From Blastocladiella emersonii ATCC 22665 (lineage: Eukaryota > Fungi > Blastocladiomycota): a stretch of 64,000 nucleotides of DNA. The DNA is taken from the NCBI GenBank assembly GCA_025594325.1, contig JANHCV010000005.1, positions 1,054,001-1,118,000 of the forward strand. Reading direction: 5' to 3'. This document shows, piece by piece, positions 1 to 63,610 of the stretch. The notes beneath the pieces were generated by a model that saw nothing but the letters and a program-made list of their open reading frames with translations, had not been told where the DNA came from and made no database searches. The translations under genes were made by a program, and so were the position numbers. Every line of letters starts with the position of its first letter. Position 1 is the first letter of the stretch.

Positions 1-3000
1 ATTGGCCGTCGTCTCGGCCATGGCCATCGCGTGCGTTCGCGTCGTGATCCTGCCCCGGCCAGCACTCCTCCACGTCGATCCAGGGCAACGTCGCGCCGCT
101 GTTGCAGCAGCACGGCCCATCCGGGTCTGGCGGCGGTAGCGGTAATACAACAAAGGTATGCTACGGATCGACTACCGCGTCACGGGAAATGACGCGTCGC
201 TCGGTCCTAGTAGACATTCAGCTCGCCATGTACACGGCCTCGGGCGGCGGTGTTCCTGCTCCATGGTTTCCGCAGCCCCTGTGCGTGTCTCGACAACAAC
301 GACTACCTCACGCTCGCCCGCCCGCCGAATGATCTCCTCCTTGCCGACAAGGTCGACCTCGACGTGGGCCGCGTCTCCAGTAGCAAGCAGCTCGGTTCCG
401 GTACGCGTGGCGTGGTCGAGACCGCCACACGACTCGCGCTAGCACGCGACCGCATCTGTGTAGCTCAGTCGACCAATTGACCGACCAATCTCGTCCTGCC
501 CAAGCTCGCACACGTTCGGCGGCGCCTTTGCTACCTCCGGTACGCCAAAGGCACGCTTTCTGGCGTCTGCTGACGTGATGCGCATCGTTACAGACCTCCT
601 ACAACAACATCAAGAAGCCTTTCGGCGGCTCCACCTCCTCGAGTCGGAACGGTACGTGTCCTGTTCTCCCTCGAGGCGCTCTCATCGAAAACGCGTCGCT
701 TTGCGCTCGTCATCCAGCTGTCCAGTTTGTTTCGCGTTACGGCCTCAAGTTCTCGACGGACCGTTTGCACGTCCGGCTCTCGAGTCCGGCCAGCCATGTC
801 GCTCGATGGCGACGACGACGCGAACACGCGCTCGCCGAGGCGATCCGGGTGCCAAGATGCAGGTCAAGCTCGACGCGGATCGCGTAGATCCCGGTACGGC
901 AGCAGCAGTTTGGTGACGGTGCGCGCGTGTTCACAAAAGATCCGCCACTCGGCTCAACACTGACCTGGGTCGGCGGCTTCCGCGTAGCAGCAACGACATC
1001 AAGCTCGCACTTGGGCGTGCTGGCCGCGGCGTCGGCCGGCTGTTCCGCGACCATCAACCGCTCCTCGTGTTTCTCGCCCAGTTCTCGCAGCAAGGTCGTT
1101 TCCTCCAGGCATTTCCTTCAAGCATGGCGGTGGCGGCGGTACGTGTCCATGGCCTCTTCGTGGTCGTCATGCCCTCATCGCTCACTCTTGACGACCGACC
1201 GTGTAGTCGCGGTGCGCGGCTGCTCGCGGAGGCTGTGCGCGCAAGTTCGAGGGACCGAGTCGCTCGACTACTACAACAACACGCTACGACAACGCGTCAA
1301 GTCGGCCACGCTCAAGTTCAACACTCAACAGTCAACAATCGACACTCAGCACTCACGTTCAACGTACGGCATGACGCTCTCGACTGACCGTGCAGCGCGC
1401 AAGTCCAAGACGGCGGGCGGCGTACATTTCCCAGCATGGATGGTACGTGTCGTTTTGCGTCGGTCGCCGCCACGAAAGGTATTACCGACGATCACTCACA
1501 TTTAGCTGTTGCCGCATCTCTCCAGATCCTCACTGTGTCGCGCGATTGAGGCACTGGCTCCCCACGGCGACACGGCACACCACGACCGAGAACCAGCACG
1601 CGCACGCTCAAGGGCAGCGGCAGCATCGGGCGTGGGCCCTCATTGAGAAGCTCGCGCTCATGGAGAAGATCATCACATACACGCTCGTTCGAGGACTCGC
1701 TTGAGGACTCGCTCGCTGATCGAGATCCGGCGCGCGACCATGGCCAAGGGTCGCGGTCGTGGCCATCATGGACTCGCTTGGGCCGTGGGTCGTCTGGGAA
1801 GGAGCAGCAGTGCAAGCAGACCATCGTCGTCGTCCATCCCCGAGACCACGCGCGCCAGGTGCGCAAGTCGGACAATCGGTAGCGTGTATGGTACGCGAAG
1901 AGTCCATCGCCATCCACAGAATAGCGACTGACGCGTCGCTCAGGGCTAGGGCGAGTACGGCACCACGACTTCTGCCCGACCAACACTAACGGCCAAGCTC
2001 ATTCAACACGGTGCTCTCAACAACTGCGACACGGCGTCTGCGACAACACCGCGCGCGCGCGGTGGTCTTTCCCGTCAGTCGACGACCACCAAGCTCCGGC
2101 CAGCCACGACACGACGCGCCGCGCCGCGACGCAAACGACCGGCTCAAGTCGGTGGCGAGCGTCATGCGTCACGCGTCACGCGGCGGGGTCGCAGGTCAAC
2201 GTCAACCTGGGACGTGTCGCGCTGGATCTGTCACTCGTGCAAACATGGCCGATCACTCACGCTACTCGCTCGCTCGTCGCACTGCCCTAGAAACCCATCG
2301 TGTGTGCCTCGACCAATTACTCGTGCGGCAGTCGAACCACTCTCTTTCTCTCGCAAACGCTTCCGCTGCCGTCATGTTCGACGGCCATTGCGTACGCACG
2401 CAACATCGTGATCACGCCTCACGCCAGCGCTGCAAGTCGATCCAGGTCAACCTCATCGCGCTCCGCCGACATTGCCGTGTTCGCGTCCGCCGCCGCCGCC
2501 GCTGCGCCAGTGGGCGGTGGTGCTACCACTCCGAAGGTACGCTACCGACCTCCTGCCGCCGCGTTGTCACGGGAAAATGACGCGTCGCTCGATGCTAGAT
2601 GACTGAGATCCCTTGAGCGGAACACGGACGAGGTCCGTCGGAGCGCGACAGCAGCAGCTACGACCACCCCAACCACACGGTACGGCATGCACTCGGGCGC
2701 GCATGTCGGCCGCAAGCTCATGGGCTACAACTCGGTAATTGTCGGCATCCTCGGCTTCGTGCAGCAGCGGCGGTGGCCCAGCACTGGACGATCAAGACGA
2801 ATACAAACGGAATCAACTGCGAGCTCATCACGATCCACCAGACGACGATCTACGGCATCAACGAGTCGACCAACACTCAGCATCCCACAAGCAGCGAACC
2901 TGGAACGTGTCGCTCTCTTTTTTCCTTCCACCACGCCCGTGCGCGAGTCCGTGATCGCTGACATGTGCTTTCTGCGACTGGTAGATGGAAGCCGCGCTAC

Positions 3001-3822
3001 TTCTCCTCGCTCGCATTGATCCGGCTCGTGTTTGCACGCGCGCCGTGCCGCGTAACGACAATCTACCGCGTCTTTGCTCGCTCGCTCGCGGCCAGCTGCT
3101 CGCCTCGTACACGGACGGCCTCGGCTGCATCCCCACCACCGCTCCGAGTCATCAACGCGCTGACCGGGACGAGGTCAAGCTCAAGAAGAATCGCGGCCGC
3201 GGGCGGATTACACAGCAACTCGATGATGATATCGGTACGCATGGCCGAGACGAGACTATCCGCACGACGGCTCGTACTGACCGAGCCGCGCGACTGCATC
3301 TGCCGTGTAGCTAGCCGACTCGACCGTCTTTGACTTGTTTCTCCGCGCCCGAACTCGCCTCCATCCTCACCGCTGCCGCCGCCACGACCAGCGGTGCTTC
3401 ACGGCGACAACGACTCGTTTCCATGACGGTACGCTCGCGCTCCGTTCCCTTTGCGCGCAGCGCTTGCGCATACCGCGGGCTGACGCGCGAACTTCGTTCC
3501 TCCAAGTAGGCACTGCACGTTCAACAGGAGCTGTCGATCGATCGTATCGCCACCGTCGCTCCACCTCTTCCTCAAGCGTCAAGCGTGTCTGGATCATCTT
3601 CCTCGTCGTCGCCCATCTGCTGCTTTGGTAACCTCAACGCTTCGCATTCGCGTCATCGCCCAACCAACCAGCGCGTGTTCGTGGCCTCGCGCTGTGACCA
3701 TGGCCGTGGAGGGCATCGACTATGGCTGATTACCCGTGACATGATCGAGCCCGGAGCGCGCGACACGAACCGACGACTCTCATCCCCGAGATACACGCGC
3801 GCACGTTCGAGTCCAAATCGTC

Positions 3823-3858
<36 letters not shown>

Positions 3859-4950
3859 CTGGCAGTGGTCGGGCAGGTCGTCGTCCAGCATGGGACGTGT
3901 TTTCCTGGTCGGTTGCGGCAACCCCACCCATTCATCAGCTGATGACCACTCACGCCTTGCTTGCTCGCTGCGCTGCACTAGTAGAGCTGGTGCCCAGTCC
4001 ACCGTGCTTTGGGCTGAAACGGTGGTCAGCAGTCCAACGATGATCATCCGTTTCTCGAGCATTGTATCGACGCTGTGATTAACAAGAATGGCGACGCGCG
4101 CGTCAAGCTCTTCTTCTCCCTCCACGTCGATCTGGTTCCACTTCACTTCTTGCCAGCAAGCTAGCTTGCCGCGCAGCACGGCGACCAAGACTCAGGTGGC
4201 GGGCGACACTACGGTGGGTGGGTACGCGAGAAGCCGTTCACTCTCGCTCGATTACTTGCCACGGATACTGAAGATTCGCCCGAGTCTTGTGAGATTCGAC
4301 GACACGAGGGCGCGACACGCGACGATTGGCCGGCGCGCTTCTTTCTGCGGCTGCGAGCAAGGCCAGCTGCTTTGACTGCAACTCACTCCACTCCAAGCTG
4401 GGCTCAGCGGCGCGTCGCGGCTCGTCGAGGCAAGATCAAGGATCTCGCTCTCCTCCTGGGCGACCTCGACTTTGCCACAAGTTGGTGACACGCTCACGTT
4501 CAACGTACAGCATGACGCTCTCGACCAACCTTGCAGCGCGGATCCAAGACGGCGGGCGGCGTACATCATTGCCCTGCATGAATGGTACGTGTTCATTTGC
4601 GTCGCCACGGAATCGTCGCCACCAATGATTACTCAGAACTCGCTGCTGCTCCTGACTGTCACCAAATCCTCAGCGTGTCCCTCGATTCCAGCGACTGGCG
4701 CTCCACGGCGGCACACGACGACCCGAGAACCAGTACGCGCGCGGTTAAGGGCAGCAGGATCGGGCGCGGGCCAGCTCTCGCACATTATGGAGCTCGTTTG
4801 ACACTCGGGCAAGGACCCGCTCGCTGATCGGGATCCAGCGCGCGGCCACGGCCATGGCCATGGTGACTCGGGCCGCGGGTCATCCAGCAAAAGGCAGCAG
4901 CAGCAGCAGTCCAAGCTGAACCATCGTCGTCCATCGCCGAGACCACTCCA
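1..4950 (+). pseudogene. Degenerate intron-rich paralogue array, units in IR1 left arm (unknown family)
   Basis: Intron-like segments at 401-463, 540-593 (GTACGC..CTGAC..CAG), 894-987 (GTACGG..CACTGAC..TAG) and 1139-1206. Internal paralogy is visible (e.g. ~1350-1460 vs ~4495-4600; 181-203 vs 2567-2592). Exon frames show stops and frameshifts between paralogues. Confidence 0.6.
3823..3858. repeat. (GTCGTG)6 microsatellite (mirror copy 13600-13635)
   Basis: Six exact hexamer units read directly. Confidence 0.9.
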
Positions 4951-5663
4951 CGCTTCCGATTTGGCCCTTGACTATGGATTGCCGCGACTCGGCACACCAC
5001 CGAGAGTTCGCCTGCTACTTTCTATGGCTTCCGAAGCGCTCGCTCAACGATCAAATCGAGTCCGCTTTCGCTAGTCTCATTGCTTCCTCTCGTATTTTTG
5101 CCTGGGCGTACTCGCAAGCTTGGTCGCCGATTCCATGCCTTTCCCGCTCAGTCGGAGTTGGAGCATTGCGCTGCTCATGCTCCACGCTGCGACCCGCGCG
5201 TCCTTGCATTTTTCTCATCAGTGGTGGGCTCTGAGCCAACGCCCAACGACGAGCTTCCAGATTGATTTTTCGCCATCACTTGTCATAAATTCAACAGGCA
5301 CAGGTGCTACGCCCGCGCTCCTCGTCAGCGGATGAACAAGCTGACGCCGCGAACAAGCAAAATGATAGGTAACTCGTCGTAAGACGCAAGAGATCGTTGA
5401 TTTTTTTCTTCAATAATGTTGTGCTCGTCGCTGAATTTAAGACTTGAGATGCCCGAAGCGTGCGACGCGTGACGCGCTGCGCCACGGCGTGACCGCGGCG
5501 AACGCTGAGTGGTCGCGGTCCGCACTGCTCATCATCCTCGTGTCTCGCATGTCTCGCACTGCTCCAGTTCCAGTCAGTCAGTCAATCGGTCTTGTATCTC
5601 TCGCCCTCATGCACCCGCTCGTTGGACGCATGCGCATGCGCATGCGTGTGCCGCCTCCGATCG

Positions 5664-5669
5664 TATAAA
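5664..5669 (+). promoter_or_regulatory. TATA box of Q/A-rich gene copy 1
   Basis: TATAAA ~90 nt upstream of the ATG at 5759 in otherwise GC-rich DNA; conserved in all four copies. Confidence 0.7.
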
Positions 5670-5758
5670 TCCGGGCCGTTCCCCGCTCTCCCCACCTCTA
5701 GCTCAACACGCTTGCATACCTTGCTCACGTATCCGACAAACCAACCTACTATCGAAGA

Positions 5759-6793
5759 ATGGGTCGCACTCAGCTCCACTCTGCCCAGCGCCAGGCCGTG
5801 CATCAGCACCAGGCCCAGGCCGCCAACGCCAAGTCCGCCACCGCGAACAACAACAACAACGCGCCCGCCGCGAAGCAGCAGCAGCAGCAGGCCCGTGCCC
5901 AGTCGCCGCAGCTCAAGCAGGCTGCTCCTGCCGCCGCTCAGCAGCAGCAGAAGCAGGCCCCGCAGCAGGCCCGCGCGCAGTCGGCTCAGCCCAAGCAGGC
6001 CGCCGTTCAGCAGCAGCAGGCTCGCGCTCAGTCGCCCCAGCTCAAGCAGCAGCAGCAGCAGGCCTTGGTCGCCGCCGCTCCCCAGAAGCAACAGCAGGCC
6101 CGTACCCAGTCCGCGGCCGCCGCCGCGCAGGTGTACCGCGCCACGCCCGTCCGCGAGCATCCCGACGACGCGTTCCTCTCGGGCGCGTGGATGTTTGACG
6201 AGGCCCGCATTCCGCAGTGGATGGCGCCACAGCTTCCGAAACAGCAGCAGGCCCGCGCCGCTCAACCCACCGTTGCTGTTCGCGCCCAGTCGCCTCAGCA
6301 GCAGAAGCAGCAGCTCAAGCAGGCCGCTCCCGCTCCCGCTCCCGCTGCCGCCGCCACGCCCGCGAAGCAGCAGCAGGCCGCCCGCGCACAGCCGCAGCAG
6401 CAGGCCCAGCTCCCGCGCAACGCCGCTGCCGTGATCCCCGTTGGCGCTGTCCGCGCCAAGAACGCGTCGGCCGACGACGCCTTCTTCTCGGGCTCGTGGC
6501 TCTTTGACTCGGCCGCCGCGCCGCAGTGGCTCCAGTCGCAGCTGCCCGCGCCCAAGGCGCAGCAGGCGCAGCAGGCGCAGCAGGCGCAGCAGCAGCAGCT
6601 CAAGCAGCAGGCCGCCGCTCCTCGCGCGCAGTCGGCCCAGCTCAAGCAGGCCGCTCCTCAGCAGCAGCAGACCCGCGCTCAATCGCCGCAGCTGAAGCAG
6701 GCGCAGCAGCTTCAGACGCCCCAGCAGCAGGCCCAGAAGCAGCAGGACCAGCGCCGCCCGCAGTCGCCGACTCGCGGCAACAAGCGCGCGTAG
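5759..6793 (+). CDS. Gln/Ala-rich low-complexity (prion-like) protein, copy 1, 344 aa, intronless
   Basis: ATG to TAG, GC3-rich codons, upstream TATA, and reading frame preserved across four copies despite in-frame indels. RAQSPQ repeats and two DDAF[LF]SG[AS]W[ML]FD modules. Confidence 0.8.
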   Translation: MGRTQLHSAQRQAVHQHQAQAANAKSATANNNNNAPAAKQQQQQARAQSPQLKQAAPAAAQQQQKQAPQQARAQSAQPKQAAVQQQQARAQSPQLKQQQQQALVAAAPQKQQQARTQSAAAAAQVYRATPVREHPDDAFLSGAWMFDEARIPQWMAPQLPKQQQARAAQPTVAVRAQSPQQQKQQLKQAAPAPAPAAAATPAKQQQAARAQPQQQAQLPRNAAAVIPVGAVRAKNASADDAFFSGSWLFDSAAAPQWLQSQLPAPKAQQAQQAQQAQQQQLKQQAAAPRAQSAQLKQAAPQQQQTRAQSPQLKQAQQLQTPQQQAQKQQDQRRPQSPTRGNKRA

Positions 6794-7290
6794 CGGCCTC
6801 GACGCATAACTATACCCTTGACGTGCATCGCGAGGAGCGAAACCGGCTCATACGATGTTCGACCAATCAATCAAAAGCATTTTTCATCCTCTCACGTATT
6901 GGAGAATCGGTGGACGCGTCGCGATATCATGTGGCGACCAAGTGGCGCGGCGGAGACAGTTTCGTTCGCGCCGGGAAGCGACCGTCGTCGTTGGCTTCCT
7001 TGGCCGTTCCTCTCACGGCTCACCGCCACTCGCCATGATATCTGATGAACGAGTCGATGCAACGACCATGTAATCACGCGATGAACTTGACTTGCTGCAT
7101 TATGGCCCTCACGCTTCCAAGTGCTTCTCAGTCGGTCGGCCGAACCGCACTGCACTTCACCCGCTTGAACGAAGCTAGCGGGCGGGGCCTCGAGCCAGGC
7201 CGACCCTCTCTCATGGTCGACCCGAATAGAATCGACCCGACGGCGATGACTTGCCGTTGATACACCAGACAGACGTGCGTCTCGAGCGGC

Positions 7291-9689
7291 ATGACGAGGC
7301 TGCCGTAAGGATGGATGAATTCCCCCGCCGTTTACGATCGCATCATGTCGCGGATCCTCTCCGACTTCCGCGGAGGCTACTGCGAGTCATATTTGGACGA
7401 CTTGCTCTCGTACGGTCCGGACTTCGTTTGCGACGAGACGCTCGACGAGCACCGAGTTCGCCAGTCCGTCGCCGACCACATTGACGGCCTTGACCAGGTT
7501 CTCGGCGCGATCGAGGGCGCCGGGCTCACGTTCGCCGTCGAGAAGACGATCCTCGGCTCCGAGTCGGTCCCGATCCTCGGCACCATCGTCGACTACTACG
7601 GCCACCGCCCCGATCTGAAACTCGTGTCCAAGATTGACCAGTGGGAGCTTCCCAAGGCGCTGTCTAACCTGCGCGGCTACCTCGCCCTCGTCGCCCAGGT
7701 GCGCATGTATGTCGCGCACTGCTCGACCATGCTCGAGCCGCTGCTCGCGCTCACGCGCGGCAAGAGCAACGCACCGGGCACGTCGCCGGTAGAGTGGAAC
7801 GACGCGGCGCGCGCCGCGAGCGCGTGGTCCAAGGCGTGGATCAAACAGATTACGGCACTCCAGGCGGTCGATCTCGACCATGGCGCTGAGCTCGTGCTAT
7901 ACACGGACGCCTCGGACGTCGGCGCCGGCGCGGCGCTCATGCGCGTGGACGCGGACGGCTGGGGGCACCCGGTGCGCTTCGAGTCGGCGGTCCTCAACTC
8001 GGCACAGCGCAACTCCAGTTCCCGAAACGCAAACTGCTGGGCCTGCTCACGGCGCTGCACAAACTCCGGCCGTACCTCGATACCCGCCGGTTCCGCGTGC
8101 GCATCAACTCGTCCGGCATCGCGCAGATCATCAACAACGGCTCCGACACTGTCGACGCGGCCATGAACCGGTGGGCGCTCGCCACTCGTGACTACGACAT
8201 GGTCGTCGAGCACGTCTCGCGCTACAAGAACAAGCTCGCCGACGCGCTGTCGCGCATAGAGTCGGCGCTCGACGACAAGAAGACGGCCGTCGAGGCCCCG
8301 GGTTCGATGCCGCAGAGGAAAAGAACCTCGACCGCGTCACCTTGGCTGAGACGGGCGTCACGCAGGGCGTCGCTGCGGCGATCGGTACTCCGTCACCCAC
8401 CGTCGCCTTCGCTATCGGCCCACTCACGCATCAACACGCGTCAAACCTCGAGTACCTGACCACGGGCGCCATGTCGCCCACGCTGCCCATGCACACGGCC
8501 GCCGAGTTCCTCGCCAAGGTCGGCGGCTACGTCGCGTGCGGGCGCCTGTATCGCATCGGCGAACCAGGCAAGCCGCCCCGTCTCGTCGTCGATCCCGCCA
8601 CGCAGTAGCGCATTCTAGCGGCGCTCCACGACGACATGGGCCACCGCGGCGAGGTCGGCACTCTCGGGCTCGCCACGCATCGCTACTACTGGCGCAACAT
8701 GGCGCACTCGATCCGCAAGTACCTGCAGTCGTGCGACTTGTGCCAACGCTGGTCTGCTCGTCGCTTCGTCGACCCGCTCGGCGGTCGCGCGGTTTCCGCT
8801 GGCCCGTTCGACCAGATCGTCATCGACCACGTGCAGTTGGCCTCGAGCAAGGCGTCGACGCAGGTCATCGTCGCGCGCTGCCTCTTCTCGGGCTACGTCA
8901 AGGCCCGCCACGTGCCAACCACCGGGGCGAGTCACGTCATCGACTTCCTCCACTCGCTGTTCCTCACGCACGGCGTTCCACGACGCATCCTCTCGGCTAA
9001 CGGCCACTGCGGCGCGGCCGCTGTCGTCGAGTGGGCCGGCGTACACGGGTGTCGGGTGACGCACACGATCGCTCCAACCCGGGCGCCAACGGCGTTGTCG
9101 AACGCGGGCACCAGTTCCTGATCCACGCGCTCGGCAAGCTGGCCACCCGCGACCCGGCCAACTGGGCTGCACACCTGCTGCCCGCGGTCGTCTTCGCTGA
9201 CCGCTGCATGGTCCGCGCCGCGACGGGCCTCTCGCTGTTCCAGCTCGTCCACGGGCGCGACCCGCGGCTCCCGCTCGACAACTTGCTCCCCGACTGTGCC
9301 GAGATTGACTTTGACGCGCCCGCTGCGAGCCTCGAGCGCCGCCTCGATGAGATCCGCGAGCATCGGTTCCGCGTCGCCGCAGCCGTGTACGACACCGCCG
9401 AGGCGCGCGCGCAGACTGCGAGGCGCAGCTCGTGCACGTCAACCGGCCCGAACCACGTCGCGTCGGCGACCTCGTCCTCGCCCTCGACATCAAGGTCGAC
9501 GGCTCGCTCTCGGACAAGGAAAAGGCCGCGCGCACCGGCCCGTACATCATTATCGACCAGGCCGCGAGCAAGCACGGCGAGCCGCTGACGACATACTCGG
9601 TGCTCAACGTGACGACGCTCGCCCAGGGCGGCGCCTGGGCCGGCAAGGCCAAAGGGCTGCGAGTGTTGTGCATGAAGCGCAGCTCCCAC
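7291..9689 (+). mobile_element. pol: Ty3/Gypsy-type LTR retrotransposon pol remnant (RT-RNaseH-integrase), 5'-truncated and pseudogenised
   Basis: RT motifs TRLP*GWMNSP and YLDD; RNase H motifs LYTDASDVG and NKLADALSR; integrase HHCC (LHDDMGH..CDLC), IDH, ANGVVER and GPY. Stops at 7306 and 8606 plus several frameshifts. RT-RH-INT order is Ty3/Gypsy. Confidence 0.92.
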
Positions 9690-10664
9690 AGGGCGCCAAC
9701 GCCCAGTTCAACCGCGTCCTTCATTGCACTGCGCTCTCGGCATGCATGAGCCAATATGTAATATCTCCATTTGTGCAGTCGACTCGCCCGCTGCTTGGTT
9801 GCCCTCTCCTAAAATGAACGAACACGTGTAATGCGTGTCCTTGACCCCAGATTTCGGCCGGGTCGCGGCCATGGTGTGGCCAAGTACGTTTAAGCATTGA
9901 TTCCGCACTGGCAGCCAGCCCGCCCATACCTCGGGGATCATCGACAACTTTGCATCAAGAGCGGCGACACCGGCTGATGCAACAAGCACATCAGCACGGA
10001 CTGCGCGCTGATCAAAACAGGCCATTAGGTTCTCATCGACCGTGTCGAAACCTTTGCTGCAGTTCGAGTCAAGTAGTTTGGGAACAAGTTCGAGACTCAC
10101 GAGGGACATCGGACAAGATGGATTTGAAACTCGTTCTGGAGCGGCAGCCGCACCGAGCACCAAGTCGGCCGCTCGGGACGCACGTCTGTCTGGTGTATCA
10201 ACGGCAAGTCATCGCCGTCGGGTCGATTCTATTCGGGTCGACCATGAGAGAGGGTCGGCCTGGCTCGAGGCCCCGCCCGCTAGCTTCGTTCAAGCGGGTG
10301 AAGTGCAGTGCGGTTCGGCCGACCGACTGAGAAGCACTTGGAAGCGTGAGGGCCATAATGCAGCAAGTCAAGTTCATCGCGTGATTACATGGTCGTTGCA
10401 TCGACTCGTTCATCAGATATCATGGCGAGTGGCGGTGAGCCGTGAGAGGAACGGCCAAGGAAGCCAACGACGACGGTCGCTTCCCGGCGCGAACGAAACT
10501 GTCTCCGCCGCGCCACTTGGTCGCCACATGATATCGCGACGCGTCCACCGATTCTCCAATACGTGAGAGGATGAAAAATGCTTTTGATTGATTGGTCGAA
10601 CATCGTATGAGCCGGTTTCGCTCCTCGCGATGCACGTCAAGGGTATAGTTATGCGTCGAGGCCG

Positions 10665-11699
10665 CTACGCGCGCTTGTTGCCGCGAGTCGGCGACTGCGG
10701 GCGGCGCTGGTCCTGCTGCTTCTGGGCCTGCTGCTGGGGCGTCTGAAGCTGCTGCGCCTGCTTCAGCTGCGGCGATTGAGCGCGGGTCTGCTGCTGCTGA
10801 GGAGCGGCCTGCTTGAGCTGGGCCGACTGCGCGCGAGGAGCGGCGGCCTGCTGCTTGAGCTGCTGCTGCTGCGCCTGCTGCGCCTGCTGCGCCTGCTGCG
10901 CCTTGGGCGCGGGCAGCTGCGACTGGAGCCACTGCGGCGCGGCGGCCGAGTCAAAGAGCCACGAGCCCGAGAAGAAGGCGTCGTCGGCCGACGCGTTCTT
11001 GGCGCGGACAGCGCCAACGGGGATCACGGCAGCGGCGTTGCGCGGGAGCTGGGCCTGCTGCTGCGGCTGTGCGCGGGCGGCCTGCTGCTGCTTCGCGGGC
11101 GTGGCGGCGGCAGCGGGAGCGGGAGCGGGAGCGGCCTGCTTGAGCTGCTGCTTCTGCTGCTGAGGCGACTGGGCGCGAACAGCAACGGTGGGTTGAGCGG
11201 CGCGGGCCTGCTGCTGTTTCGGAAGCTGTGGCGCCATCCACTGCGGAATGCGGGCCTCGTCAAACATCCACGCGCCCGAGAGGAACGCGTCGTCGGGATG
11301 CTCGCGGACGGGCGTGGCGCGGTACACCTGCGCGGCGGCGGCCGCGGACTGGGTACGGGCCTGCTGTTGCTTCTGGGGAGCGGCGGCGACCAAGGCCTGC
11401 TGCTGCTGCTGCTTGAGCTGGGGCGACTGAGCGCGAGCCTGCTGCTGCTGAACGGCGGCCTGCTTGGGCTGAGCCGACTGCGCGCGGGCCTGCTGCGGGG
11501 CCTGCTTCTGCTGCTGCTGAGCGGCGGCAGGAGCAGCCTGCTTGAGCTGCGGCGACTGGGCACGGGCCTGCTGCTGCTGCTGCTTCGCGGCGGGCGCGTT
11601 GTTGTTGTTGTTCGCGGTGGCGGACTTGGCGTTGGCGGCCTGGGCCTGGTGCTGATGCACGGCCTGGCGCTGGGCAGAGTGGAGCTGAGTGCGACCCAT
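10665..11699 (-). CDS. Gln/Ala-rich low-complexity protein, copy 2, 344 aa
   Basis: Translation identical to copy 1; lies in the IR1 right arm. Confidence 0.8.
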   Translation of the reverse strand: MGRTQLHSAQRQAVHQHQAQAANAKSATANNNNNAPAAKQQQQQARAQSPQLKQAAPAAAQQQQKQAPQQARAQSAQPKQAAVQQQQARAQSPQLKQQQQQALVAAAPQKQQQARTQSAAAAAQVYRATPVREHPDDAFLSGAWMFDEARIPQWMAPQLPKQQQARAAQPTVAVRAQSPQQQKQQLKQAAPAPAPAAAATPAKQQQAARAQPQQQAQLPRNAAAVIPVGAVRAKNASADDAFFSGSWLFDSAAAPQWLQSQLPAPKAQQAQQAQQAQQQQLKQQAAAPRAQSAQLKQAAPQQQQTRAQSPQLKQAQQLQTPQQQAQKQQDQRRPQSPTRGNKRA

Positions 11700-25272: not shown

Positions 25273-25670
25273 CTACCCACGCTTGTTGCCGCGGGTCGGC
25301 GAATGCGGGCGGCGCTGGTCCTGCTGCTTCTGAGACGGCTGCTTCTGCTGCTGCGGAGCAGGGGCGGCCTGCTTGAGCTGCGGCGACTGAGCGCGCGCCT
25401 GCTGCTGCTGCTGAGTCGGGGCGGCAGCCTGCTTGATCTGAGCCGGCTGCGCGCGAGGAGCGGTGGCCTGCTGCTTGAGCTGGTGCTGCTGGGTCTTGGG
25501 CGCGGGCAGCTGCGACTGGAGCCACTGCGGCGCGGCGGCCGAGTCAAAGAGCCACGAGCCCGAGAAGAAGGCGTCGTCGGCCGACGCGTTCTTGGCGCGG
25601 ACAGCGCCGACGGGGATCACGGCAGCGGCGTTGCGCGGGAGCTGGGCCTGCTGAGGCTGCGTACGAGTGA

Positions 25671-25702
<32 letters not shown>

Positions 25703-26214
25703 GCCTTGGGCAGCTGCGGCGCCATCCACTGCGGGACGCGGGCCTCGTCAAACATCCACGCGCCCGAGAGGAACGCGTCGTCGGGGTGCTCGCGCACGGG
25801 CGTGGCGCGGTAGACCTGCGCGGCGGCGGCCGCGGACTGGGTACAGGCCTGCTGTTGCTTCTGGGGAGCGGCGGCGACCGAGGCCTGCTGCTGCTGCTGC
25901 TTGAGCTGGGGCGACTGCGCGCGAGCCTGCTGCTGCTGAACGGTGGCCTGCTTGGGCTGAGCCGACTGCGCGCGGGCCTGCTGCGGGGCCTGCTTCTGCT
26001 GCTGCTGAGCGGCGGCAGGAGCAGCCTGCTTGAGCTGCGGCGACTGGGCACGGGCCTGCTGCTGCTGCTGCTTCGCGGCGGGCGCGTTGTTGTTGTTGTT
26101 CGCGGCGGGCGCGTTGTTGTTGTTGTTCGCGGTGGCGGACTTGGCGTTGGCGGCCTGGGCCTGGTGCTGGTGCACGGCCTGGCGCTGGGCAGAGTGGAGC
26201 TGAGTGCGACCCAT
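25273..26214 (-). CDS. Gln/Ala-rich low-complexity protein, copy 3, 313 aa (diverged type)
   Basis: ATG at 26214 with the same N-terminus and both aromatic modules. Has a 27-bp ANNNNNAPA duplication, a shorter central region and the C-terminus RRPHSPTRGNKRG. Confidence 0.8.
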
Positions 26215-58654: not shown

Positions 58655-58987
58655 GCGCGCGTCGGTTTGTGTTGTGGATACCCGTCGTCGTTGGTGAGGC
58701 CGGGTGTGAAGAAATCTGCTGTGTCCTGTATCGAATATCATCCGCTGTAACTATCAGCCATAAGCGCTGGCTTTGAAGAAAGCCGTCGGTGAAAGCCTTA
58801 GAACCGCGAGGGAGCAAAAGTCGCGCTGCGCCACGGCGTGACCGCGGCGAGCGCTGAGTGGTCGCGGTCCGCACTGCTCATCATCTTCGCGTCTCGCATG
58901 TCTCGCACTGTTCCAGTCAGTCGGTCCTGTGCCCCCTTCGTTTGCACTCGCCGAGTCCCCGCCGCATGCGTGTACCGCCTCCGACCG

Positions 58988-58993
58988 TATAAA
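58988..58993 (+). promoter_or_regulatory. TATA box of Q/A-rich gene copy 4
   Basis: TATAAA at conserved spacing from the ATG at 59083. Confidence 0.7.
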
Positions 58994-59082
58994 TCCGGGC
59001 CGTTCCCCGCTCTCCCCACCTCTTGCTCAACACGCTTGCATACCTTGCTCACGTACCCGACGAATCTCCCTACTATCGAAGA

Positions 59083-60264
59083 ATGGGTCGCACTCAGCTC
59101 CACTCTGCCCAGCGCCAGGCCGTGCACCAGCACCAGGCCCAGGCCGCCAACGCCAAGTCCGCCACCGCGAACAACAACAACAACGCGCCCGCCGCGAACA
59201 ACAACAACAACGCGCCCGCCGCGAAGCAGCAGCAGCAGCAGGCCCGTGCCCAGTCGCCGCAGCTCAAGCAGGCTGCTCCTGCCGCCGCTCAGCAGCAGCA
59301 GAAGCAGGCCCCGCAGCAGGCCCGCGCGCAGCCGGCTCAGCCCAAGCAGGCCGCCGTTCAGCAGCAGCAGGCTCGCGCGCAGTCGCCCCAGCTCAAGCAG
59401 CAGCAGCAGCAGGCCTTGGTCGCCGCCGCTCCCCAGAAGCAACAGCAGGCCCGTACCCAGTCCGCGGCCGCCGCCGCGCAGGTGTACCGCGCCACGCCCG
59501 TCCGCGAGCATCCCGACGACGCGTTCCTCTCGGGCGCGTGGATGTTTGACGAGGCCCGCATTCCGCAGTGGATGGCGCCACAGCTTCCGAAACAGCAGCA
59601 GGCCCGCGCCGCTCAACCCACCGTTGCTGTTCGCGCCCAGTCGCCTCAGCAGCAGAAGCAGCAGCTCAAGCAGGCCGCTCCCGCTCCCGCTCCCGCTGCC
59701 GCCGCCACGCCCGCGAAGCAGCAGCAGGCCGCCCGCGCACAGCCGCAGCAGCAGGCCCAGCTCCCGCGCAACGCCGCTGCCGTGATCCCCGTTGGCGCTG
59801 TCCGCGCCAAGAACGCGTCGGCCGACGACGCCTTCTTCTCGGGCTCGTGGCTCTTTGACTCGGCCGCCGCGCCGCAGTGGCTCCAGTCGCAGCTGCCCGC
59901 GCCCAAGGCGCAGCAGGCGCAGCAGGCGCAGCAGGCGCAGCAGGCGCAGCAGGCGCAGCAGGCGCAGCAGGCGCAGCAGGCGCAGCAGGCGCAGCAGGCG
60001 CAGCAGGCGCAGCAGGCGCAGCAGGCGCAGCAGGCGCAGCAGGCGCAGCAGCAGCAGCTCAAGCAGCAGGCCGCCGCTCCTCGCGCGCAGCCGGCTCAGA
60101 TCAAGCAGGCTGCCGCCCCGACTCAGCAGCAGCAGCAGGCGCGCGCTCAGTCGCCGCAGCTCAAGCAGGCCGCCCCTGCTCCGCAGCAGCAGAAGCAGCC
60201 GTCTCAGAAGCAGCAGGACCAGCGCCGCCCGCATTCGCCGACCCGCGGCAACAAGCGTGGGTAG
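59083..60264 (+). CDS. Gln/Ala-rich low-complexity protein, copy 4, 393 aa (mosaic)
   Basis: ATG at 59083. N- and C-termini are copy-3 type, the middle is copy-1/2 type, and it contains 15 QQA units. Confidence 0.8.
   Translation: MGRTQLHSAQRQAVHQHQAQAANAKSATANNNNNAPAANNNNNAPAAKQQQQQARAQSPQLKQAAPAAAQQQQKQAPQQARAQPAQPKQAAVQQQQARAQSPQLKQQQQQALVAAAPQKQQQARTQSAAAAAQVYRATPVREHPDDAFLSGAWMFDEARIPQWMAPQLPKQQQARAAQPTVAVRAQSPQQQKQQLKQAAPAPAPAAAATPAKQQQAARAQPQQQAQLPRNAAAVIPVGAVRAKNASADDAFFSGSWLFDSAAAPQWLQSQLPAPKAQQAQQAQQAQQAQQAQQAQQAQQAQQAQQAQQAQQAQQAQQAQQAQQQQLKQQAAAPRAQPAQIKQAAAPTQQQQQARAQSPQLKQAAPAPQQQKQPSQKQQDQRRPHSPTRGNKRG
59911..60045 (+). repeat. (CAGCAGGCG)15 coding minisatellite
   Basis: Fifteen exact 9-mers counted; three in copies 1/2 (6560-6586) and none in copy 3. 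Confidence 0.93.
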
Positions 60265-61625
60265 CGGCCTCGACGCGTAACGATACCCTTGGCACGCATC
60301 GCGAGGAGCGAAATCGGCTCTCCATGATACTTGTGCGATCAATAAACGCTTTCTTCTTCATTTCATGTACAAAAGCATTGGTGGACGCGTCAGAGATCGC
60401 CGCCAAGTTTGTTCGAGCGGGACGCGTGCGCGTTTCGGCCGGCCGACGGAGAGGCGCTTGTACGCGCGAGGCCTTGATGCAGCCAGAGTCACCGTCGCCG
60501 TGCGCTTCTTTCGCCGTATCTACTCGTTCATTGGATTCATGGCAAGTAGTGGTGGTGGAGGACGGTGACAGGAGTGGTGAGGGCGGCCGACGATGGCTCG
60601 CCCTTGAACCGGTTGCGCCTTTGTTCGCGGGCAGGCTCGCGGGCAGACGTCTTCGGCTGCCCCAGCGCAATCCTCGAGCACACCTTCAGCCTCGCCCTCA
60701 ACGGCGACCAACCCGTCCGTCGTGAATCTACGCTTCAACGTGCTTCCCGACCTGCGACCTCGCGCGCTCAACAAAGTGGACGAGCAGCTCGAAACCCGGC
60801 TCGTGCTGCGCGCCGTTGGCGGTGACGCGCTTGTAGTTCACGGTGATGTCGCCCTCGGTGAAACCCCATGCTGCCCGCACGGCAACGTTGAAGGGCCGAG
60901 AGTCGGCGCTCAGTGCGGTGCCGCTGTTTCCTGCAGCTCACAACGCTTCCATGCGAAGATCCGTGTTCGTTGCATAGAGTGATGGGCCGCGAATAAGCAC
61001 AGATGCTGCGAGGATGTTGATCGACGGATGGGAAGGGAGGGAAGCAGCGGCGCCTGGCCTGGCGCAAGTCACGGCAGATCGTGTCTCGCGCCGCTCACGT
61101 GTTTGTTTGACGCGTCCCTCCGCGCGCGAGACAGGTTTCGGGTACGCCGAGAGAAACGCATGAGGTCCCCTCATGAAGGCTTTAATGGACAATCAACTCG
61201 TTAAAAAATGACCATTAGAAGACAAGGCGGCGCAAAAGGGATGTTCGAAACAGAGGAAGAGGAGGTTGACACCAAGACAGGATTGGATCCTGTGGCGGCA
61301 GACTCCCCCGGCCCTGTTGAGAGCATCACCTTTGGCCGGCTGGCTAAGGCCGGGCCGACATCTAAGCCTGAATACGTGCTCAAGTACTGCTCGCCGTCGT
61401 CGCAACACGAGTACTTGTTAGGCACAACAAAGTTTCAAAGGTGCGAGGACGCGACACACACGCGTGTGTCGCAGCGCGGTTCAGAACGCGGTAGCGCCCA
61501 CCGGGCGTATCATCGAAGAGTTCGGATCAACATTGAGCCTCACATGCACGGTTTACAGAGAATCGCGCGTGTATTGAATGCAGGTCGTGCAGCGTTGGCA
61601 GACACGACCAACCGTTGATCGCCGC

Positions 61626-62792
61626 TCAAAAGTTGCCGCGAACCGGGACGGGCAGGTACGGCGCCTCGAGGGCGGCCTTCTCCTCGGCCGTGAGCGTGAT
61701 CGAGAGCGCGGCGACCGCGTCCTCGAGGTACGCGACCTTGTTGATGCCAACGATCGGCGCCGTGATCTCGGGCTTGGCGAGGACCCACGCGAGCGCGACC
61801 TGCGATGCCGGAACGCCGCGCGCCGCGGCCACCTTGCGCAGCGCCGCGATGCTACGGTCGTCGGTCGCCGCCACAATCGCCTTGGCGCGGTCCTCGTTCG
61901 ACAGCTCGGCCGCCTCGACCGTCTCACCCGAGCCGCCGTCCGCCAAAGAGGACGACTCGGTCAGGTGGATCACGTTGCGCAGCGTGTCAGTCTGCGCGCG
62001 CAGCGAGGTCGTCGACTTGCCCTTGTCCGAGAGCAGGCCGCCAGCGAGCGGCGACCACGGGATCACGCCGACGCCCATGTCGCGGCACAGCGGCAGCATC
62101 TCGCGCTCCTCCTCGCGGTACGCCAGGTTGACGAGGTTCTGCATGCTGACAAATTGCGTCCACCCGTTGCGCTCGGCCACGGCCTGCGCCTTGGCAAACT
62201 GCCACGCGTACATGGAGCTCGCGCCAATGTAGCGGACCTTGCCGGCCTTGACGAGGTCGTGCAGCGCGCCCATGGTCTCCTCGATGGGCGTGTTGTAGTC
62301 CCAGCGGTGGATCTGGTACAGGTCAATGTAGTCGGTGCCGAGGCGCGCGAGCGAGGCCTCGACCGCCTCGAAAATGTACTTGCGCGAGAGGCCGCGCTTG
62401 TTGGCCATGGCGTACGCGGGCAGCGACGCGAGCGCCGGCTGGTCGGTCGGCGTGTCGCCGACCTGGAAGAAGACCTTGGTCGCAATCACAATCTCGGACC
62501 GCTTGATGTCGCCGTTCTCGCGCATGAACTGGCCAAGGAGGCGCTCCGACATGCCCGAGGAGTAGACGTCGGCCGTATCGAAGAAGTTGATGCCGTGGTC
62601 CCACGCGGCGCGCAGGAGCGGCAGGGCCTTGTCGGCGTCGAGGACCCACTTTTCCCAGTCGGACGAGCCGTACGACATCATGCCGACGCAGATGCGCGAG
62701 ACCTGGAGGCCGGTCTTGCCGAGGCGGGCGTAGTGCATCTTGTGCGCGTTCGGGCGGTCGGTGGCGGTCGCAGCGGTGGTAGTGGTCGACAT
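61626..62792 (-). CDS. Aldo-keto reductase, second copy, 388 aa
   Basis: Translation identical to 22745-23911. Confidence 0.95.
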   Translation of the reverse strand: MSTTTTAATATDRPNAHKMHYARLGKTGLQVSRICVGMMSYGSSDWEKWVLDADKALPLLRAAWDHGINFFDTADVYSSGMSERLLGQFMRENGDIKRSEIVIATKVFFQVGDTPTDQPALASLPAYAMANKRGLSRKYIFEAVEASLARLGTDYIDLYQIHRWDYNTPIEETMGALHDLVKAGKVRYIGASSMYAWQFAKAQAVAERNGWTQFVSMQNLVNLAYREEEREMLPLCRDMGVGVIPWSPLAGGLLSDKGKSTTSLRAQTDTLRNVIHLTESSSLADGGSGETVEAAELSNEDRAKAIVAATDDRSIAALRKVAAARGVPASQVALAWVLAKPEITAPIVGINKVAYLEDAVAALSITLTAEEKAALEAPYLPVPVRGNF

Positions 62793-63610
62793 GCTGGTGA
62801 TGTGGTTTTGGGAGTGGCGGTTGCTGGGTGCGTTGGACTGTGTGTCTTGGGAGAGAGCGCTGCGACCGACCGACCCTTCTTATACCGGAGCCGTGTTGGG
62901 CTCGTTGGTCGCCACGGGTCGCCGGCGGAGGCGAAACGCGCCCGCTTGCAGCGCTCCGTCGGAGCCCAGCGACCGCGCTGCGCCACTCCCCGTCGGGGCC
63001 CATCGGCACGCCACCTCGTCATCGCAGCGCCGCCGGGGCCGGCAGTTTGCTCGCAACTCAAGTGTGCGTGAAGCCGCGACATGAGGGTATACTTTCCTGC
63101 TCACTCGTCTCAACACTCGTCCGTGTCACCGGGTAGGGCCAAAAGTGAACTGTTCTTGACGGCGAGTGGCATCGTATCCACTCGACCAAGTTTCCACGGC
63201 CGGATACGCCGTTGGAGATGCTGTCGCTCACGTCGGGGACAGGCGAGAGCGCCGCGGGCAAAGTTGGCGGCTCAGCGCTCGCGTCCAGGTCCTCGGCAAA
63301 TTACGAGTTCGGCAGCAGCAGCAGCCTTCGGTCCCACGTACGACATGTTCCCGCCCGGATCGCGGGCGGCCAACGAGGTCGAGCAGTACCGCCGACATCT
63401 CAAAATGAGAGCCTCGAGTATCGGACAAGTCATGCATGTACTCGGCGCTCTGTTATCCTGCCTTGCGTTCGAAGCAACCGAGGTCGACAGGGCAGCTCGT
63501 TCGTGAGTTTCTGCGCTCCTTGACTGGGCCGGAGCCACATGAAACGTGACGCGATGCTCAAGTGCACGTGACGTGGGCTCAGCAAAGTGGTAAGTTGAGA
63601 TCCGGTCAGC

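Follow-up and report, generated by a model that had tools for sequence, protein, structure and literature searches.

A gene for a predicted disordered, glutamine/alanine-rich protein in a palindrome of Blastocladiella emersonii belongs to an undescribed W/F-module family of Blastocladiomycota

What is the function of a protein that consists almost entirely of glutamine, alanine, proline, lysine and arginine? The question is raised by a stretch of 64,000 nucleotides of the blastoclad fungus Blastocladiella emersonii ATCC 22665 (contig JANHCV010000005.1, positions 1,054,001 to 1,118,000; hereafter the window), which carries four copies of a Q/A-rich gene cassette in inverted repeats. An earlier note, made from the letters alone, had read this cassette as a prion-like gene encoding a condensate or functional-amyloid scaffold, with its dosage and length tuned by palindrome-driven duplication and conversion. 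Our analysis of the gene, its paralogues and its relatives demonstrated, at the level of sequence, a module-defined blastoclad multigene family that is undescribed and whose module is novel. We favor the reading that the protein is a phospho-regulatable, bivalent docking or adaptor protein, namely a disordered and polycationic member of this W/F-module family, and we place its probability at roughly 0.55.

All four open reading frames (ORFs) of the window, counted from a conserved ATG, are intact and lie where the earlier note had placed them (Table 1; positions without a contig are those of the window). The gene was also confirmed to be intronless and to have its own TATA promoter; a TATAAA lies about 95 nt upstream of the ATG of copy 1, within a block that is invariant across five close paralogues. 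In all 12 family genes examined, exactly one TATA[AT]A was found within the 300 nt upstream, at -64 to -101; from the base composition of this 65% GC genome, the chance of such a hexamer was estimated at about 2% per 300-nt stretch. The GC content of the Q/A frame at the three codon positions (GC1, GC2 and GC3) is 0.80, 0.49 and 0.87, and the difference between GC3 and GC2 is a coding-sequence signature in this GC-rich genome. The ratio of nonsynonymous to synonymous substitution rates (dN/dS) was 0.19–0.25 in well-aligned close paralogue pairs, and paralogues differ by synonymous changes only in the module core described below. Furthermore, when the subfamily on contigs 17, 15 and 4 was compared with those on contigs 11 and 7, DNA similarity started exactly at the ATG (5759) and stopped at the stop codon (about 6792), indicating that only the coding sequence is conserved between subfamilies. 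On this evidence, the cassette is a real, intronless, TATA-driven gene under selection. Between copies of the two inverted repeats that had been distinguished in the window (IR1 and IR2), the homology of the cassette extends from 5471 to 6920 and thereby takes in 288 nt before the coding sequence and 127 nt after it; the upstream flank of about 290 nt given before was accurate, but the 3′ flank of about 200 nt was too long.

The same observations bear on the explanation that the ORF is non-functional and carried along with repeats, or that it is gag-like and belongs to the retrotransposon next to it. The same strand has a truncated reverse transcriptase (RT)/RNase H remnant 520 nt downstream, the ORFs are absent from the public annotation, and long ORFs arise in all frames of GC-rich DNA, all of which would fit such an origin. 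However, a dN/dS of about 0.2 and a GC3 signature that singles out one frame are not consistent with it; nor are the conservation of nothing but the coding sequence between subfamilies, the TATA box that each gene has to itself, the lack of an RT neighbour at most copies, the truncation of the pol remnant at the palindrome junction, and the presence of related genes in five other blastoclad species. The Gag of a long terminal repeat (LTR) retrotransposon was rejected specifically, with no gag or zinc-knuckle match in Pfam, most copies without an adjacent pol, and conservation of the coding sequence only. We regard this explanation as largely refuted and give it hardly any weight.

The family is defined by its module, which has the consensus [DE]-[DT]-x-F-x-[ST]-G-[AS]-W-[LM]-F-[DN]-x4-P-x-W-[LMF]-x2-[QE]-[LV]-P. 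Members carry one to five modules of about 25–40 residues each, and each window copy has two that match the family profile [DE][DT]xFx[ST]G[AS]W[LM]F[DN]x4PxW. The 12-residue cores of these two modules, at 6164–6199 and 6473–6508, had been described as invariant islands among variable spacers; their coordinates proved exact, and the cores are identical across the window copies. Across 61 distinct instances from at least seven species, the glycine and the first tryptophan were conserved in 100%, the phenylalanine and the proline in 95% each, and the second tryptophan in 93%. A 43-residue profile of the module, searched against 1.84 billion representative proteins, retrieved 31 matches with E ≤ 1e-3, including 24 with E ≤ 1e-10. 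The named matches are all called “hypothetical protein” and come from Catenaria anguillulae, Allomyces macrogynus, A. javanicus, Coelomomyces lativittatus, Blastocladiella britannica and B. emersonii, while the remainder are unnamed metagenome or ENA proteins. Judged by its named matches, the family has been found so far only in Blastocladiomycota.

The arrangement of the window protein is shared by its relatives to different degrees. An M-G-R start and a basic RRPxSP tail occur in all window copies and in most members from B. emersonii and B. britannica, and RRPxSP is found near the C-terminus of most family members, those of other species included. The 232-residue protein P0033 of B. britannica has the M-G-R start, module A, module B and an RRPQSP tail with far shorter spacers. 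Other relatives use the module in varied contexts, including members that are not Q-rich and members with predicted hydrophobic anchors at the C-terminus. Modification of the M-G-R start by N-myristoylation was set aside as a candidate, since position 6 is not consistently Ser or Thr and some relatives begin with M-A-R or M-V-R.

That no described family could be recognised was borne out by our searches. In Pfam, neither the window proteins nor six paralogues from B. emersonii nor ten relatives in other species matched a family, and only sub-threshold PAM2 hits and noise were obtained. A search of the PDB with the module profile at E values up to 10 yielded chance matches only (DltD and a designed scaffold), a search of the ESM Atlas with a 193-residue relative returned nothing usable, and literature searches on blastoclad low-complexity proteins and on the locus tags of the relatives turned up nothing on the family. 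The DDX6-binding motif of Pat1, the SHP box, the LC3-interacting region (LIR) and the MDM2-binding motif were also considered, and their spacing does not match that of the module.

The protein is extremely basic. Copy 1 contains 28.5% Q, 25% A, 8.7% P and 11% K+R and has an isoelectric point (pI) of 11.9, and the net charge ranges from +24 to +30 across the copies. As had been noticed before, aromatic residues are concentrated in the two acidic modules of this Q/A/P/K/R protein: all ten F, W and Y residues and eight of the nine D and E residues lie there, the aromatic residues forming two clusters at residues 126–154 and 242–257. The proteins also contain five to eight R-x-x-S-[PA] sites each. 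AlphaFold2 models built with family alignments had a mean pLDDT (predicted local distance difference test) of 46.8 for copy 1 and 51.7 for P0033. Short helical turns with a pLDDT of about 55–71 were predicted only at the modules, together with one helix across the AQQ tract, and no beta strands were predicted in copy 1 or P0033. Going by these models, a disordered chain in which two docking segments have local order is the best description of the protein.

The copies differ in protein and spacer length because of in-frame repeats. Copy 1 has 4.2 perfect units of the minisatellite AGGCGCAGC, copy 4 has 16.2 and copy 3 has none; copies 3 and 4 also have a duplicated 27-bp unit. Sequence comparisons demonstrated that purifying selection acts most strongly on the module, and that the Q/A/P/K/R spacers drift and vary in length by in-frame slippage. 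The claim that dosage and length are tuned was an over-reading: length changes by slippage, and nothing demonstrates tuning.

These data do not bear out the prion-like or functional-amyloid reading, in which the Q-rich regions would form a cross-beta core. The Q+N content of 31–34% is in its favor, as is copy 4, which alone contains a prion-like stretch, taken here as at least about 60 residues rich in Q/N and poor in charge and proline, by virtue of its variable 51-residue (AQQ)17 tract without charge or proline. However, K, R or P recurs with a median gap of four residues; in copies 1–3 the longest run free of K, R, D, E and P is 15–16 residues, and the best 60-residue window still holds five or six charged residues and four to six prolines. 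The AQQ tract itself is a copy-variable minisatellite, which copy 3 lacks and for which the model shows a helix; no beta structure was predicted, and the net charge is about +29. An amyloid is, in our estimation, very improbable.

A sticker-and-spacer condensate scaffold was the other half of the earlier proposal. Here, the acidic-aromatic modules of one molecule would bind the cationic Q/A spacers of another, or RNA would be bound by the spacers, and the phase-separation threshold would be set by copy number and spacer length. The segregated charge (a net +24 to +30, while two islands hold every aromatic and almost every acidic residue), the predicted disorder, the many near-identical gene copies, and the repeated R-x-x-S-P sites that could tune charge are all in line with this, and the explanation is compatible with an adaptor role. 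In contrast, each chain has two aromatic clusters rather than evenly spaced stickers with a valence well above 2, and relatives with a single module, or without Q/A spacers, still keep the module. The strict position-specific conservation of the module also suggests a stereospecific interface more than generic stickiness. Comparison with prion-like domains of the FUS/hnRNPA1 type leads in the same two directions. Low complexity, richness in Q, predicted disorder and aromatic residues as the sole hydrophobic features are shared; however, the window protein has 11% K+R, 9% P, a net charge of about +29 and two tight, conserved aromatic clusters, and it lacks the Gly/Ser/Tyr-rich composition and the even aromatic spacing of that type. 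We consider a condensate scaffold a possible but rather unlikely explanation.

Gln-rich regions around a short hydrophobic motif also recall transcriptional co-activators, in which the modules would be acidic-hydrophobic activation motifs that dock on Mediator or another co-activator. The activation motif of yeast Gcn4 is W-x-x-L-F, and the module, in which D, W, F and L/M cluster ahead of a Pro amid Q-rich sequence, is comparable to it; the basic tail could serve as a nuclear localisation signal. However, Pfam found no DNA-binding or other domain in the window proteins, some relatives have predicted membrane anchors, and activation domains are normally poorly conserved in sequence, whereas the module is strictly conserved. 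A co-activator appears improbable to us.

In the docking or adaptor reading, the module is a stereospecific docking site. We infer this from its position-specific conservation and from the fact that it recurs in proteins that are Q-rich, not Q-rich or possibly membrane-anchored, and each module would fold upon binding a conserved cellular partner. If the modules are docking sites, proteins with two of them would therefore be bivalent linkers or adaptors. The cationic spacers with their repeated R-x-x-S-P sites would make such a linker switchable by phosphorylation; R-P-x-S-P fits the consensus sites of DYRK-type and other proline-directed kinases. The tryptophan-based acidic motifs in disordered tails of accessory proteins of vesicle coats provide a parallel, with the W-x(1-6)-[WF] motif of delta-COP and the W-x-x-F-acidic motifs of AP-2. 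The likeness extends to W-x-F in an acidic context, a disordered chain, multiple copies and, in some relatives, predicted anchors, but the blastoclad module differs in its 25-residue pattern, its far stricter conservation and its second, P-x-W element.

A possible partner is hinted at by two relatives. KAI9190380.1 of B. emersonii and KAI9216642.1 of B. britannica contain L-N-[IV]-N-A-x-P-F-Y-P, a near-consensus PAM2 motif, with scores of 16.0 and 14.4 bits (E = 0.0097 and 0.031) against the Pfam model PF07145. Chance is an unlikely explanation for two independent sub-threshold matches to one and the same model of 18 positions. In poly(A)-binding protein, the receptor of PAM2 is the MLLE domain, of which the genome encodes a single one (contig 16:1275884-1276078). 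The two relatives, at contig 1:4776144-4776620 and P0023 of B. britannica, differ in the position of the motif relative to the module. Their PAM2-like motifs weakly suggest a link of the family to poly(A)-binding protein and messenger ribonucleoproteins (mRNPs). The PAM2 proteins that bind the MLLE domain in poly(A)-binding protein, such as Paip2, ataxin-2, Tob and GW182, likewise combine disorder with short conserved motifs, and the near-consensus PAM2 of the two relatives and the single MLLE domain add to the likeness. They differ from the window copies, for which the Pfam scan gave no PAM2 match, and the W/F module that defines the family departs from the PAM2 pattern.

Several points weigh against the docking or adaptor reading. 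Compared with typical linear motifs, the module is of greater length and more rigid conservation, and it could instead serve self-association or the binding of nucleic acids or membranes. The Q/A-rich copies are absent from the public annotation, and so no independent gene model backs them. The PAM2-like matches fall below the Pfam gathering cut-off of 20 bits and are absent from the window copies.

Other short motifs were observed in relatives. A second subfamily (contig 1:1757787 and 1699264, with relatives in Catenaria and B. britannica) has K-Y-[VI]-P-P-x-x-R, P-T-W-R(-P) and A-L-V-L-[KR]-R-R after the last module, motifs that the window copies do not have. The first of these resembles Y-[IV]-P-P-H-L-R in the N-termini of DDX3/Ded1, a motif linked to eIF4E binding. 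Three family proteins from three species (contig 3:621833-622510, P0003 of Allomyces and P0016 of B. britannica) end in [AG]-C-W, and P0024 and P0027 have a hydrophobic stretch near the C-terminus. Judging from their sequences, these ends may be membrane anchors or lipidation sites.

The gene is not restricted to the window. Protein and module-profile searches of the B. emersonii genome (21 contigs, 32.65 Mb) gave 41 module matches, which were resolved into about 27 genes; in this genome scan, the profile recognised the two modules of the window copies with E values of 4.8e-26 and 2.4e-21. There are 12 two-module Q/A-rich genes, of which contig 17 has eight, contig 15 three and contig 4 one, and the description as a four-copy gene holds within the window but not genome-wide. 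Eleven of the 12 are intact. The copy at contig 17:645027-645959 is the only one with an internal stop, a TAA between the modules. This probable pseudogene is homologous to the window as far as 7288, the palindrome junction. Eight further Q/A-rich genes have one module: contig 11 has five of them, contig 7 has two, and contig 1 has one that encodes 624 residues. Seven family members are not Q/A-rich.

The Q/A-rich subfamily appears to be missing from the public protein annotation. None of 13 Q/A-rich ORFs (three distinct window proteins and ten from other contigs) had an exact match in a collection of 15 billion proteins, and four relatives that are not Q-rich are identical to the GenBank proteins KAI9190380.1, KAI9164383.1, KAI9189210.1 and KAI9189187.1. 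A word-based search with residues 118–290 returned relatives from B. britannica and two non-Q-rich B. emersonii proteins, and no Q/A-rich protein of B. emersonii. The published annotation was made by the funannotate pipeline with ab initio predictors, and the subfamily may be unannotated because low-complexity sequence was missed or masked. The annotation probably misses low-complexity genes more generally. The published assembly of ATCC 22665 comprises 21 contigs and 34.27 Mb, with the telomere unit AAACCT (PMC9730499), and we observed AAACCT arrays at contig starts.

IR1 and IR2 are not two systems: IR1 is the inner 7.3 kb of one palindrome (contig 17:1037963-1087256, with arms of at least 23.3 kb), and IR2 pairs the outer segment of its right arm with a dispersed third copy of that segment (Table 1). 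Each arm has one inner and one outer cassette, and the outer cassette of the left arm, a fifth copy, lies about 9 kb upstream of the window start. The arms differ mainly within the outer Q/A gene, which encodes 393 versus 313 residues. A difference of 80 codons in otherwise near-identical arms argues against a trivial fold-back artefact of assembly, and it indicates fast repeat turnover. The 5′ break of the pol remnant in the spacer coincides with the palindrome junction at 7290.

A paralogous palindrome is present at contig 15:1268001-1288000, and both its junctions and its RT-remnant spacer are homologous to those on contig 17. Over at least 7,574 nt, identity between its own arms is 100%, while the two palindromes are only 81–91% identical to each other. 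Identities of 99.97–100% between the arms of one palindrome, against 81–91% between palindromes, point to arm-to-arm gene conversion. In the simplest reading of these alignments, the palindrome is older than the duplication, and gene conversion homogenises its arms. The comparisons demonstrated, as far as sequence can, that the Q/A-rich subfamily grew by segmental duplication with concerted evolution. Of the earlier claim of palindrome-driven duplication and conversion, homogenisation of the copies inside palindromes stood, and the tuning of dosage or length did not. The palindromes of primate sex chromosomes likewise have large, near-identical arms, multi-copy genes in mirror pairs and arm-to-arm conversion; in contrast, the present palindrome is in a fungal genome, has a retrotransposon remnant as its spacer, and is read from the genome assembly.

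Table 1. Features of the palindrome, the four cassette copies and copy 1 of the Q/A-rich gene, in window positions.
Feature	Position	Strand	Description
Left palindrome arm	-16038 to 7290 (in-window part 1-7290)		Runs 16 kb beyond the window start
Palindrome spacer	7291-10167		2,877 nt; truncated retrotransposon pol remnant
Truncated pol	7315-8166	+	C-terminal part of RVT_1 and RT_RNaseH_2; Pfam E 2.5e-10
Right palindrome arm	10168-33256		99.8-99.97% identical to left arm, outer Q/A gene excepted
Dispersed third copy of outer 4.7 kb	58812-63487		Holds copy 4
Copy 1 coding sequence	5759-6793	+	344 aa, intronless, pI 11.9, net charge +29
Copy 2 coding sequence	10665-11699	-	344 aa; same as copy 1, mirror arm
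Copy 3 coding sequence	25273-26214	-	313 aa; outer cassette of right arm
Copy 4 coding sequence	59083-60264	+	393 aa; in dispersed third copy of outer segment
Promoter and 5′ leader of copy 1, conserved	5471-5758	+	TATAAA near 5664; A(-3)/G(+4) start context
Module A	6134-6238	+	Residues 126-160: YRATPVREHP-DDAFLSGAWMFD-EARxPQWMxxQLP
Module B	6431-6547	+	Residues 225-263: VIPVGAVRAKNAS-DDAFFSGSWLFD-SAAAPQWLQSQLP
9-bp minisatellite AGGCGCAGC, in-frame	6555-6592	+	Encodes (AQQ)n; 4.2 units in copy 1
Basic C-terminal tail, conserved	6752-6790	+	RRPQSPTRGNKR-x; contains R-P-x-S-P site

B. emersonii is under development as a model zoosporic fungus. About 19 Q/A-rich genes are apparently missing from its public protein set and would be invisible to any proteomics or transcriptomics that relies on this set. 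The paired palindromes on two contigs represent clear concerted evolution by arm-to-arm conversion in an early-diverging fungus.

For the family, a more speculative and rather improbable extension of the docking reading takes the W/F module as a new docking domain specific to the phylum, by which a large set of polycationic multi-phosphosite proteins would organise a blastoclad-specific structure. The compartment of stored mRNA and ribosomes in the zoospore is a candidate because the PAM2-like motifs of the relatives hint at poly(A)-binding protein, and it would be switched at germination by phosphorylation of the R-x-x-S-P sites. Module peptides or point mutants offer a concrete handle on this family, found so far only in Blastocladiomycota.

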